Counted from the stretch's first letter, positions 11,291-22,105 are shown. The stretch is 64,000 bases of DNA from Octopus sinensis (GCF_006345805.1 NC_043021.1:27900001-27964000); one strand, 5' to 3'. Translations and numbers: made by a program. Notes: generated by a model not told the origin, from the sequence alone.

Positions 11291-11601
11291 TATCTATCTA
11301 TCTATCTATCTATCTATCTATCTATCTATCTATCTATCTATCTATCTATCTATCTATCTGTCTGTCTATCTAGCTATCTATCTATCTATCTATCTATCTA
11401 TCTATCTATCTATCTATCTATCTATCTATCTATCTATCTGTCTATCTGTCTGTCTGTCTGTCTGTCAGTCTGTCTGTCAGTCTGTCTGTCTGTCTGTCTG
11501 TCTGTCTGTCTGTCTGCTGTCTGTCTATCTATCTATCTATCTATCTATCTATCTATCTATCTCTATCTATCTATCTATCTATCTATATCTATCTATCTAT
11601 C
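11291..11601. repeat. (TATC)n/(TGTC)n compound microsatellite at the left edge of the LINE array
   Basis: Direct read. Confidence 0.97.
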
Positions 11602-11757
11602 TTCTTTTTTTTAAATCCTCCCCTTTTTGTCCTCTTTCTTTCCTTTTACGATCCCTTTTGATCGAAAACCAACCCCCTTTTTTTAACACCAAAAGAAAAG
11701 CTCTACCTTGTAATTTGTTCTGTCTGTGTGCAGCCCTGTGTGGCTAATAAAGAAACA
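11602..11757 (+). mobile_element. Tx1-like LINE 3'-terminal stub (about 156 bp)
   Basis: Matches the 3'UTR end of the larger copies up to GCCCTGTGTGGCTAATAAAGAAACA. TATC on both sides. Confidence 0.9.
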
Positions 11758-12106
11758 TATCTATCTATCTATCTATCTATCTATCTATCTATCTATCTAT
11801 CTATCTCTATCTATCTATCTATCTATCTATCTATCTATCTATCTATCTATCTATCTATCTATCTATCTGTCTGTCTATCTAGCTATCTATCTATCTATCT
11901 ATCTATCTATCTATCTATCTATCTATCTATCTATCTATCTATCTGTCTGTCTGTCTGTCTGTCAGTCTGTCTGTCAGTCTGTCTGTCTGTCTGTCTGTCT
12001 GCTGTCTGTCTATCTATCTATCTATCTATCTATCTATCTATCTATCTATCTATCTATCTATCTATCTATCTATCTATCTATCTATCTATCTATCTATCTA
12101 TCTATC

Positions 12107-12263
12107 TTCTTTTTTTTAAATCCTCCCCTTTTTTGTCCTCTTTCTTTCCTTTTACGATCCCTTTTGATCGAAAACCAACCCCCTTTTTTTAACACCAAAA
12201 GAAAAGCTCTACCTTGTAATTTGTTCTGTCTGTGTGCAGCCCTGTGTGGCTAATAAAGAAACA
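12107..12263 (+). mobile_element. Tx1-like LINE 3'-terminal stub, duplicate of 11602-11757
   Basis: Essentially identical sequence, with the same preceding microsatellite interruption pattern. Confidence 0.9.
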
Positions 12264-12360
12264 TATCTATCTATCTATCTATCTATCTATCTATCTATCT
12301 ATCTATCTATCTATCTATCTATCTATCTATCTATCTATCTATCTATCTATCTATCTATCT

Positions 12361-18105: not shown

Positions 18106-18162
18106 CCTCACTTCTTGCCTCTTGTCTCTTCTAATATAGTGTGTAAATCACAATTTTCGTAA

Positions 18163-21100
18163 ATGTCAAGTATGCTTAAATTAGGTTGTGTGAATGCGCG
18201 TGGCTTGGCGTCGGCTTGGAAGCAAGGTTACCTTCTAAACGACATCAAGTCACTGGACGTGGATATAGTAGCTATCAGTGAAACCAGACTCAGTACGCCG
18301 CGGGCCCTCGAGTCCATGTTTGGCAATCAATTTGACATTTATTTTTCTCCCTGTCTGCCGAACATGGGTGGTGGAGGTACTGCGGTGCTTTTTCGAAAGA
18401 GTCTAGAGGTAAAAGTAAGAGCAATATTCCTAGACCCGGAGGGTAGGCTGGTTGTCTTGGACGTGGATGGCAGAAATGGGTGTGCATTCCGTCAATTGGC
18501 AGTTTATGCACCGTCCTTAACGGGTCGGGCGGATTTCTTCAGACGTCTAGAGGTTTTCCTGGGTACGTCTAGACCTTTACTGTTAGTAGGGGATTGGAAC
18601 GCTACCTTGGACACGCATCTAGATTATGTGGGAAGGGATAGGAATAGAAGGGGGTGTAAGAGCCTCAAAGACCTGCTCAGACGTTTCCATTTGTCTGACA
18701 GGTTCCGACTCGACCATCCGAACGTGCCAACGTGGACTTGGACAAACCGCGTCGGATCGTCGAGATCTTATCTAGATAGAATTCTATGCAGGACAGCGGA
18801 TAGGGATAGTGTAGGATGTCCACAATTTAAAATAGTCAGCTACACAGATCACAAATTTGTTACGTGTACGCTCGACTTAGATAAAACACATAGGCAGGGT
18901 CCCGGTTACTGGAAACTGAACACGTCGCTGTTAGCGCGACAGGTTTACAGGAACCGGATTAGCGAGTTAATTAAGAGGGCGCTGACGGGAGCGGTCGTTA
19001 ACAACCGCTGGTGGTACGCCCTGAAAATGGCAATAAAATCGGAATCAATTAGGTTTAGCAAGGAATTATCGATAGAACGAAATAGAGTAGAGGGAGACTT
19101 AGTTAAGAAACTAGAAGAGGCACTTACCACTGGCGCGCAACCAACGTGCTGGCTGCGAGGATGGCCCTCGACCAACACCTCAACGCCAAGCACGAAGGTT
19201 GCGTCGTCAGAGCTAAAATGCGTGCCTTAAGGAACGAAGGATTGAATGCGCGAGAGGCCCGGGTAGCGGAGGCGCAGCGTGGCAACAGATCAACCATTCG
19301 GTCTCTAATAGATCAACAGGGATGCAGTTTACTCGAACCCGAAAGGATGTGTGAGGCCTTTCAACAGCACTTTGCTCGACTGTTTGGTGCGAGTGGTGGG
19401 TCGGAACGAGGGATGGATTTCAGTGCCTACCTGACCGACCTGCCGCGGCTCTCGGCAAGAAGCGGAGTGTTGTGAAAGTCCCATCACAGCCGCTGACGTG
19501 TGGGATGCGATGGCGGGCTGCGCGAGGGATAAGTCGCCTGGATTGGATGGTTTACCCTACGAGAGCTGTATTGTCGAATGCCAGACTTGTTTGGCGACCT
19601 CTTGGCATCAGTCTACTGCAACTGGCAACAAAACGGGAGAATCCCCGGTTTCGTGAGCCGAGGTGCAGTGACGTTGCTGAAGAAAGACTCAAACAAGGGG
19701 AATTTTATAGATAATTTCAGGCCCATCACTCTGCTCAACGCAGATTTGAAAATTTTGGCCAAAGTAATAGCCGAGAGGTTGGCGCTTGTCATTGGTAAAC
19801 TGGTCGACAGGGCGCAAACATGCGCCGTGCCGGGCAGAACCATACATGACAACCTCCATCTGATGCGCTACATTGTGGACAGGGTAGTTAAGGATCCTGG
19901 CATGGGTGGGGCGCTGATAAATTTGGATCAGTCTAAAGCCTTCGATAGGGTCGACCATCGGTACTTGGCGGCCGTCCTCAGGGCGGCTGGCTTCGGTCCC
20001 GTGTTCCGCGGTTGGATCGCTGCCTTGTATAGCGGCATCCGATCGGTGATTCGGGTGAACGGTCACCTGTCGAAACCGTTTGACATCACGCGTTCGGTCC
20101 GTCAGGGGTGTCCCCTGTCGGCGCTTCTGTATGTATTGACTCTCGAGCCGCTACTGCGGAAGCTGGCGACACTGAGGGGCATCCCACGGGAACTGGGTTG
20201 CGGGACGAGCGTGTCGGCATATGCGGACGATGTCACCGTCATAGTGTCGAGCTACCAGCACATCGAGCTGGTCGGCGAGACACTAAGAAAATATGAAACG
20301 GTGACGGGAGCAAAGATTAACCCGGAAAAGTCAGTGGGTTTGCTACTCGGCACCTGGAGAAGCAAGCCCATGCCGTCCGACTGCGGCTCAGTAGTGGGAC
20401 GCTGGACGGACGGGCCGGTTAAATTGCTCGGGGTCTGGTTCAGTCCGGACCTCCAAATGGATAAGAACTGGGACGAGATCACAAGTAGAGTGGTCGCTCT
20501 CAGCCAAACATGGGCCGAGAGAAAGCTGTCTCTAAAAGGCCGGGCGGAGGTGGCGAACGCGTACATCGCATCCGTCATCGATTACCGCCTGACCGTCGTA
20601 CCTTGCCCCGACGCCACCATCACCAAACTGGAACGCATACTCTTCCGCTTCCCGTGGAAGGGTGGTGTTCCGATGGTGAGGAAGTCCATTTGCTGTCAAC
20701 ATCCGTTGAATGGAGGACTGGGCATGCGGTGGTTGATGATGCGCAGGCATGCGCTGAGACTGCGACATCTCTGGAAATTCATCGACGACGGTGAACAGGT
20801 GTGGGCGCCGTTTGTGAGGCGCGACTTCCCGCAGCTCGTCTCACTGACCGAACTGCAAACGTGGATCAAAAAGAGACCGAAACTGGGCGATTGGCACCGA
20901 GAGTGTCGCCAAGCTCTACAGCAGCTCTGCCGACCGAGGTCAAACTTGTGCAACTTCCAAACGACTAAAGCGTTCTATAGAGGACTAGTGGAGGGGAGGT
21001 CCGACGACACACTCGGGGCAAACCTGGGCGTCGACGAGGAATTCCTAACCCGCCTGTTCAGGACGACGTTCGGGCCGGGGCCTATGGATAACTTCCAGAA

Positions 21101-21606
21101 ATCCCTGGCTTGGCAGTGCTATCGAGACGCACTACGTGTTCGAGAGAAGAGCTACAGACGGTTCGAAAACCATCACCGGACCGACCTGCCCGAGATGCGG
21201 TCAGAGCGACGAAACCGTTCTGCACGCACTCGTGCAGTGTCCAGATATTTCAGAGCTGTGGTCCTTCGTCGAACAGCTGTTGTCACGTGTAGGTCAGGCT
21301 CGCCTATCGGCCGAGTCTATCGTGAATATTGTTCCACCACCTTCCTTTAAACGGGAAGGGAAAACGGTTTTCGTTACGCTGATGGCTATGGCGAAAGAAT
21401 GTGTGTGGTGGACACGTTTGAAAGGACTGCAAACAAACACCTTCCTCTCTGGTCAGTCTCTCGTCAACTTTTTCAAGTACCACTTGAAAAGGTGGATGAG
21501 AATAGAGAGGAAGGCTTTGTCGAACGAATGTTTTAATAAAAAGTGGGTAAAAGTGGCAAAAATGGTCAGTATGAAAGACGACACTATTTTAAGCATAAAT
21601 CTGTAA
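18163..21606 (+). pseudogene. LINE ORF2: APE endonuclease, reverse transcriptase and C-terminal Zn finger, with about 3 frameshifts
   Basis: APE motifs NARGL, ISETR, YAP, GDWN, SYLDRI and TDH; RT motifs PGLDG, FRPITLLN, KAFDRV, RQGCPLS and AYADD; CPRC..ETVLH..C. Confidence 0.93.
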
Positions 21607-21916
21607 CCAAAAGAGACAATGAGAAGTAAGGCGACTTACTCATGTGTTCTTTTTCGAATTGTCTGAGGTGACCTTGGTCTTTTTTGCAGGTTTTTCTTTC
21701 CAAGACTACACCTAAACTGTGAACCTTATATGTATATATATATATATATATATATTGCTTTTTTATACACCACACAACCCACAGATCCCTATTGATCAAA
21801 CGTTTTTTTTTTTTTTTTTTTTTCCCCACCCATCCCACCTCGAAAAGAAAAAATTCTACATTGTATTTCGTCCATTTTTATTCTGTGTTTAGCCCTGTGT
21901 GGCTACAATAAAAAGT

Positions 21917-22105
21917 TATCTATCTATCTATCTATCTATCTATCTATCTATCTATCTATCTATCTATCTATCTATCTATCTATCTATCTATCTATCTATC
22001 TATCCATCTATCTATCTATCTATCTATCTATCTATCTATCTATCTATCTATCTATCTATCTATCTATCTATCTATCTGTCTGTCTATCTATCTATCTGTC
22101 TGTCT
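21917..22105. repeat. (TATC)n microsatellite at the right edge of the LINE array
   Basis: Direct read. Confidence 0.98.

Follow-up and report, generated by a model that had tools for sequence, protein, structure and literature searches.

Same-strand LINE copies stacked in (TATC)n arrays in Octopus sinensis, and a proposed role for tail-target pairing

Introduction

Several long interspersed nuclear elements (LINEs) with an apurinic/apyrimidinic endonuclease (APE) are associated with one particular microsatellite: Waldo with (ACAY)n, Mino with (AC)n, Kibi with (TC)n, Koshi with (TTC)n, Dong with (TAA)n and the Tx1 elements of crocodilians with (TTCC/TTTC)n (PMC3812793; PMC4494074). For Kibi, Koshi, Dong and Waldo, the mechanism behind the microsatellite target has been called "not well understood" (PMC3812793). 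Here we describe a 64-kb stretch of the Octopus sinensis genome (GCF_006345805.1, NC_043021.1:27900001-27964000; hereafter the window, with positions counted from its first nucleotide) in which five pieces of one LINE family, all on the plus strand, are stacked over 10.8 kb with nothing but (TATC)n between them. The stack is a new example of a known LINE habit and not a new class of system. We read the region as a nest of at least four insertions plus one duplication of ~490 bp and, with only modest confidence, favour the view that the preference for TATC is led by pairing between RNA tail and target, the repeat being primarily the element's own 3′ tail.

The closest counterparts are Kibi, Koshi and the crocodilian Tx1 elements, which are likewise APE LINEs of the L1/Tx1 group with a single microsatellite on both flanks, the motif varying among related families. 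What sets the octopod family apart is a TATC/GATA motif, a cephalopod host, a repeat that is apparently its own tail and a nearest tail-less relative that apparently inserts without specificity; furthermore, they were defined by genome-wide flank statistics, while the octopod family is known from one window. Dong, Waldo and Mino are also LINEs tied to a specific microsatellite (PMC3812793), and the (TAA)n of Dong is the same repeat as the (ATT)n tail of octopod sister families described below. These three belong to the R4 (Dong) and R1 clades, unlike the octopod element, which matches human L1 ORF2p best and carries a CCHC knuckle in its first open reading frame (ORF1).

Two other systems resemble the octopod family at its 3′ end or in its target. 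A small conserved hairpin near the end is a feature of eel UnaL2 (PMC1636434) and of L1-clade LINE pairs with short interspersed nuclear elements (SINEs) (PMC3472496), and stringent LINEs of the UnaL2 type also have a short tandem-repeat tail and SINE-like repeats bearing the LINE 3′ end, as seen here in Argonauta and, through a related motif, in the window. The differences are that octopod tails are very long (20-80 units), that copies stack in each other's tails, and that UnaL2 belongs to L2 whereas the octopod element is of L1/Tx1 type with a hairpin of putative role. The Bombyx elements SART1 and TRAS (PMC7265360) share a short tandem-repeat target and a fixed orientation, and their accurate initiation needs the RNA 3′ end; unlike the octopod element, they have poly(A) tails, a demonstrated sequence-specific endonuclease and a fixed position within the repeat unit. 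A search of the full-text literature found no paper on a GATA/TATC-associated LINE or on cephalopod LINE tails of this kind, and a corresponding Repbase or Dfam family may exist.

Structure of the Stack

Between 11291 and 22107, five LINE pieces lie one by one between six (TATC)n arrays. The first-pass annotation, made from the sequence alone, had recognised five same-strand pieces spaced only by TATC, and this is borne out by direct sequence reading, Tandem Repeats Finder (TRF) and BLAST, on which the following layout is based. A sixth copy, A1, lies at the start of the window.

1-1078, plus strand: copy A1, C-terminus of ORF2 and 3′ untranslated region (UTR) of a subfamily-A copy, its 5′ side cut by the start of the window
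1053-1066: A1 3′ hairpin, AGCC-CTGTGT-GGCT, followed by AATAAA at 1067-1072
1079-1195, plus strand: A1 tail, (TATC)n of ~29 units, then (TA)n
11291-11603, plus strand: leftmost array, degenerate TATC/TGTC, first half of tandem unit 1
11604-11757, plus strand: p1, a 154-bp 5′-truncated 3′ UTR piece from a source lineage lacking the T-rich insert of subfamily A
11758-12107, plus strand: TATC/TGTC array of tandem unit 2, with interior variants matching 11291-11603
12108-12263, plus strand: p2, 156 bp, duplicate of p1
12264-12360, plus strand: pure (TATC)24 array from p2 to A2
12361-15716, plus strand: A2, 3356 bp, subfamily A, 5′-truncated inside the APE domain
15717-15799, plus strand: A2 tail array, 88% pure
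15800-15904, plus strand: p4, a 105-bp 3′ UTR piece of a fourth lineage, with a p1-type start, GATCGAAAACC
15905-16015, plus strand: p4 tail array, which is also the upstream flank of B
16016-21916, plus strand: B, 5901 bp, subfamily B, full-length but predicted to be inactive
21917-22107, plus strand: B tail array of 48 units, 96% pure, bordered by TCATCCCC(TC)n(TA)n

The leftmost array meets unique AT-rich DNA at 11290, the rightmost stops at 22107 against TCATCCCCTCTC, and array purities within the stack range from 82 to 100% by TRF. All six 3′ ends in the window, including that of A1 at 1078, have the form ...GGCT/C-AATAAA...(A/T)|TATC, in which the hairpin is followed by AATAAA, then 6-10 nt, then TATC. 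Likewise, all five 5′ junctions directly adjoin TATC with zero bases between: p1 and p2 begin ...TATCT|TCTTTTTTTT, A2 begins ...TATC|TCAGAGACC, p4 begins ...ATCTAT| followed by its p1-type start, and B begins ...ATCTAT|TGACGGATG. Throughout the window, each of the 17 perfect (TATC) runs of at least four units is attached to a LINE and lies in the TATC orientation, with no such GATA run on the plus strand and no free perfect tract of this length. The sole other TATC-like tract is a short TATC/TGTC mixture at 37813-37887, which has no adjoining LINE.

Four Independent Insertions and One Duplication

How much weight the junctions can carry depends on how many of them arose separately. The segments 11291-11757 and 11758-12263 are 97.6% identical and form a tandem segmental duplication of ~490 bp, in which both units carry the odd interior variants TAGC, (TGTC)n, TGTCAG and GCTGTC along with one and the same truncation point; p1 and p2 themselves are 99.4% identical and differ by one T. 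They are a local tandem duplication produced by unequal exchange between TATC tracts, representing one insertion event, and p1 and p2 are therefore counted once. Thus, the observation that TATC abuts six 3′ ends and five 5′ junctions stands as made, but their independence does not: there are four independent 5′ junctions and five independent 3′ ends, with four of those five 3′ ends in one cluster.

The remaining pieces are clearly distinct. By BLAST, identity is 95.3% between A1 and A2 over 1082 bp, about 80% between A and B, 84.6% between p1 and p4, and about 90% between p4 and A, in agreement with the earlier proposal of at least two diverged subfamilies; overall, mutual identity among the four lineages is 80-93%. 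At least four insertions thus occurred independently to build the stack, their sources being four lineages that can be told apart, and the independent pieces comprise three different truncation points and one full-length copy on a single strand. A TRF period of 188 bp had raised p4 and its array as a candidate tandem copy of the end of A2, which was rejected on the p1-type start of p4 and its lack of the A2 T-rich insert.

The chance that three further insertions would fall in a tract of at most 0.35 kb within 64 kb is (0.0055)^3, or about 2e-7, and the chance that four insertions would share one orientation is 1/8. Since the nesting of four lineages in the same orientation cannot be random, random insertion is excluded and the preference for TATC tracts is real at this locus.

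Anatomy and Classification of the Element

The complete copy, B, is divided as follows, with a spacer of 57 bp between its two reading frames.

16016-16215, plus strand: 5′ UTR, 200 bp
16216-18105, plus strand: ORF1, which contains a CCHC knuckle and is interrupted by an in-frame stop at 16786-16788
18163-21606, plus strand: ORF2, with APE, reverse transcriptase (RT) and a C-terminal CX2CX8HX4C motif
21607-21916, plus strand: 3′ UTR, with a hairpin at 21891-21904

ORF2 of B is colinear with that of an intact 1111-aa relative (P0126), against which it shows at least 4 frameshifts, near 19135, 19444, 19573 and 21183, and A2, with many frameshifts and stops, is much more damaged than B. Both reading frames of B are broken, and neither B nor A2 is predicted to be active. 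Pfam identifies Exo_endo_phos (6.9e-18; 18163-19230) and RVT_1 (1.5e-30; 19578-21350) in B, and the top solved-structure match for both RT and endonuclease is human L1 ORF2p (2e-33 for RT, versus 3e-19 for R2; 1.6e-9 for the endonuclease). After the RT, within 21136-21606, comes the Cys-His motif CPRCGQSDETVLHALVQC (CX2CX8HX4C); a zf-RVT match of 7.5e-4 falls under the Pfam cut-off, and the score of the ORF1 CCHC knuckle, CYKCGSPEHLIAKC, 20.8 bits, is equal to its Pfam cut-off.

The proteins closest to ORF2 come from octopods and other coleoids (73% in an NCBI assembly, 65% in Argonauta hians, 42-51% in Acanthosepion), and in papers on octopus repeats L1-Tx1 is the one L1-type group listed, 13 families being recently active in O. 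vulgaris (PMC13282606, PMC8967140). Because of the matches to L1 ORF2p, the octopod and coleoid proteins and this octopus listing, we assign the element to the L1/Tx1 superfamily, in line with the Tx1-like label of the first-pass annotation, and probably to the Tx1 clade within it; its predicted domains mark it as a LINE with both APE and RT. A type-I-like ORF1, with an RNA recognition motif (RRM) and/or a CCHC knuckle, is consistent with Tx1 in non-mammalian animals (PMC5203782). Pfam detected no RRM in ORF1 of B, and the homologue search retrieved no ORF1 homologues. ORF1 of B contains long Thr/Asn/Pro-rich low-complexity runs (16377-16471 and 17300-17600), including a (CAC)n tract, and comparable runs of Pro/Thr/Gln follow the CCHC knuckle of the sister element L016; such runs probably explain why ORF1 homologues were not retrieved.

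A Conserved 3′ End with a Variable Tail

Comparison with relatives separates the part of the 3′ end that is kept from the part that changes. At the nucleotide level A and B are mutually nearest (79-86%), followed by metagenome and European Nucleotide Archive (ENA) contigs (73-79%) and then Argonauta (66-72%). In the 73-79% group, comprising L003, L016 and probably L017, the hairpin and AATAAA are as in A and B and the element ends GAAATC(ATT)n: L003 ends ...GGCC-CTTGT-GGCC-AATAAAAGAAATC(ATT)n with at least 29 units, and L016, downstream of an intact 1111-aa ORF2, ends ...GGCC-CTAGT-GGCC-AATAAATGAAATC(ATT)n with at least 24, while the L017 sequence stops at ...AATAAAGAAACGATTATTAC and probably continues into an (ATT)n tail. 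In the window itself, (TTA)n arrays at 2575, 34465 and 37634 were considered as tails of such sister families and rejected, there being no LINE 3′ motif adjoining them.

The Argonauta hians copy (L001, 6886-12650), which has ORF1, APE and RT, ends ...GGCC-CTTGT-GGCT-AATAAAGAAATCTAT and lacks a microsatellite. On both sides lies a 17-bp target-site duplication (TSD), TATTTTTAAAATTTGTA, in ordinary AT-rich non-repeat DNA; as a control, a common word of as much as 16 nt occurs in only 0.5% of random fragment pairs from the Argonauta locus. TAT is common to the end of the element and the TSD, a 3-nt overlap between RNA end and target that is the kind of microhomology expected if pairing guides insertion. 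A second complete copy of the 3′ UTR (12294-12650) lies ~130 bp past the first 3′ end of this LINE, and since both copies sit inside the single 17-bp TSD, the duplicated 3′ UTR moved within one element. More distant cuttlefish and ENA relatives (42-59% aa identity) end GGCCTYGTGCCAYATTTGTA...CAATAAATA, again with no microsatellite.

Microsatellite targeting is thus not common to the nearest relatives, of which Argonauta is tail-less with a TSD and the sisters carry (ATT)n. Because relatives keep the hairpin and AATAAA but differ in tail, the conserved part appears to be the 3′ hairpin and AAUAAA region, and the microsatellite a clade-specific tail that may be absent, (ATT)n or (TATC)n. One and a half units in TATC phase are already present in the ancestral terminus, AUCUAU. 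A search for the 3′-end motif gave 6 chance bacterial matches in metagenome contigs, 0 in genome contigs and 0 in viral contigs.

Two observations on relatives stand apart. An ENA contig of 26.3 kb named as circular (L014; ERZ26052130 ctg11195c) holds head-to-tail copies of a relative with 46% aa identity, at a period of ~7.55 kb; these represent a true tandem array of LINEs or else an element that sits within a target which is itself tandemly repeated. In addition, a C-terminal fragment of an octopod-type LINE ORF2, 62% identical to the window copy, has been deposited as a protein of a Herbaspirillum sp. metagenome-assembled genome on a 1.8-kb contig (P0026 / P0130; MCP3653585.1, WP_288064025.1). 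It is almost certainly host contamination, and the related-locus search found 0 loci related to this Herbaspirillum-labelled protein.

The 3′ Hairpin and Its Possible SINE Partners

Hairpin arms were counted directly in 18 3′ ends, drawn from the window, L003 and, in Argonauta, the LINE and the SINE-like repeats. All keep the 4-bp stem, with a closing pair that is pairable in 17 of the 18 (A-U in 7, G-U in 6, G-C in 4, mismatch in 1); the stem is also present in 4/4 minimum free energy (MFE) folds. The hairpin is likely to be a recognition element of the "stringent" type.

The Argonauta locus provides a further indication. Between 1464 and 15320 of L001 there are ~10 SINE-like repeats of ~250 bp, some of them in tandem (e.g., 14810-15063 and 15063-15313), which end CGGCCCTTGTGGCTAATAGAGAAATCTAT, the same 3′ end as the Argonauta LINE, with unrelated sequence beyond. 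A shared 3′ end with unrelated flanks points to the 3′ end, and not a target, as what is recognised. One such end, on the minus strand at 14236-14256, lies ~55 bp from a (TATC)15 tract.

The window also contains tRNA-like SINEs, at 9965-10170, 54540-54770 and 60390-60575 on the plus strand and at 52900-53160 and 49079-49101 on the minus strand, which end GGCYTTGTGCCAAAAYTTGAAAC(C). Their terminal motif, GGC-YTTGT-GCC, also closes cuttlefish and ENA Tx1-like LINEs (L015 at ~8580-8625, L014 at ~6905-6945 and L004 at ~7195-7240), which suggests that coleoid SINEs may be partnered with Tx1-like LINEs via a common 3′ end. LINE/SINE pairs with a common 3′ end are reported to be rare among L1-clade LINEs (PMC3472496).

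What Draws New Copies to TATC

We infer that the main source of the preference is pairing between tail and target, not sequence specificity of the endonuclease, and that the TATC tail lies within the transcript. In the LINE RNA, the small conserved hairpin and AAUAAA would be separated by about 6-10 nt from a terminal (UAUC)n tail, so that every copy would deposit a (TATC)n.(GATA)n tract. Target-primed reverse transcription would begin most easily where the RNA tail pairs with (GATA)n on the nicked bottom strand; the 3′ end exposed by such a nick could pair with (UAUC)n over many bases, while the Argonauta relative copes with 3 nt. Later copies would then enter the tracts of older copies, or any TATC microsatellite, preferentially and in a forced orientation.

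On this mechanism, arrays would grow by accretion because copies deposit the very tracts that tail pairing favours, orientation would be fixed because the nicked (GATA)n 3′ end pairs with (UAUC)n, and tails could differ between sister clades without parallel endonuclease changes because pairing supplies the preference. The earlier suggestion that insertion leaves new target and that arrays are self-growing fits well, each copy having added a new TATC tract.

Several points weigh against this account. All of the 5′ junction evidence comes from one cluster, and the window offers no solitary copy with a visible 5′ flank; the contigs of relatives that were inspected supplied 3′ ends, but in none of them was the 5′ flank of a TATC-tailed copy found. 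The hairpin has just 4 bp, and MFE z-scores are not significant. The leftmost array, which is the most degenerate, could be a genuine pre-existing microsatellite target. Lastly, the endonuclease of the Tx1 type element is, according to Christensen et al. 2000 as cited in PMC4494074, itself site-specific, and target choice is mainly credited to the endonuclease in the field (PMC4494074).

The alternative to be taken most seriously is that the APE endonuclease evolved specificity for (GATA)n.(TATC)n in the manner of Kibi and Koshi, so that the flanking TATC is target and the tail a regenerated or co-transcribed target. Every independent copy in the window has TATC on both flanks, and the tally of 4/4 independent 5′ junctions and 5/5 independent 3′ ends, from this window only and with its junctions from one cluster, would class the family as target-specific under the operational rule used for Tx1 families (>20% of flanks in one sequence; PMC4494074). 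Microsatellite targeting also recurs in the Tx1 clade, at (TC)n, (TTC)n and (TTCC)/(TTTC)n, and the association with TATC is steady across the ~20% nucleotide divergence between A and B. Against this, the case rests on one cluster and four independent junctions, the closest outgroups have an (ATT)n tail or none, the Argonauta copy inserted non-specifically with a TSD, and the window's TATC tracts are all LINE-attached, leaving the short TATC/TGTC tract as the only "free" target.

The leftmost array bears on both models. The first-pass annotation took its border with unique DNA as a sign that TATC is not only a tail; the border is real and is a point for endonuclease specificity, but it is indecisive, since a tail-only insertion is the natural extreme of the process. 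Such an insertion is plausible because extreme 5′ truncation is seen here (105 and 154 bp), of which 0 bp would be the limit. The array could have been a microsatellite before any insertion or could be a tail-only insertion itself, and it does not separate the models. A GATA-specialised endonuclease, as first proposed, is possible but doubtful: the data do not favour it over tail-target pairing, and the relatives point to a clade-specific tail. It is important to stress that the two models are mutually compatible.

A second alternative dispenses with insertion preference altogether and derives the stack from recombination between TATC arrays or from template switching by RT between LINE RNAs. 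Unequal exchange between TATC arrays did occur here, in the p1/p2 duplication, template jumping is well established for the reverse transcriptases of LINEs, and the distant relative in L014 has LINE copies arranged head to tail. However, this requires four lineages of 80-93% mutual identity, each with its own 5′ end point, to have come together in one orientation, array purities of 82-100% suggest different ages, and ectopic exchange between dispersed copies would usually also rearrange the flanks, all of which make this explanation unlikely. That the array is wholly or partly an assembly artefact, with reads mis-joined across TATC repeats, is very improbable: long microsatellites are prone to assembly errors and the 490-bp duplicate, being near-identical, is possibly a mis-expansion, but the pieces differ in sequence, subfamily and truncation point and the arrays have individual variant patterns.

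Returning to tail-target pairing, one extension of it can be put forward tentatively, namely that the clade is a lineage part-way from non-specific to microsatellite-specific integration. An ancestor ending ...AUCUAU would have inserted anywhere with TSDs, as in Argonauta, and expansion of that end to (UAUC)n, or to (AUU)n in the sister clade, would have supplied both a tail and, via pairing, a target.

Other Repeats in the Window

Outside the stack, a 2.6-kb C-rich minisatellite (55900-58964) has a 9-bp-type unit, one frame of which reads PLPPLTPLP. Directly adjoining it is the C-terminal fragment of a LINE (58.7-58.96 kb), similar at its C-terminus to another LINE at 34770-35198 on the minus strand. 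Further transposon debris lies at 24121-26711 (minus), 28921-29643 (plus), 34770-37262 (minus) and 41893-45400 (plus). It includes PIF1-like helicase fragments (Helitron-like), a Tc1/mariner HTH_Tnp_Tc3_2 transposase fragment, a second LINE with RT, and a strongly C-skewed block with a weak GIY-YIG match that is possibly Penelope-like.

Implications

If the preference holds genome-wide, a tetranucleotide, GATA/TATC, and a mollusc host would join the short list of microsatellite-associated APE LINEs. The tail-less element with a TSD, the (ATT)n elements and the (TATC)n elements with stacking form a natural series, in which the choice of target by tail or by endonuclease becomes testable. Were the part-way reading true, microsatellite "specificity" of an APE LINE could evolve via the RNA tail, with the endonuclease changing only later or not at all, and most TATC microsatellites of the genome would be LINE-made and then LINE-reused. 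A genome-wide preference would also account for the origin and clustering of octopod TATC microsatellites, and that origin is relevant to repeat annotation and to the design of microsatellite markers.

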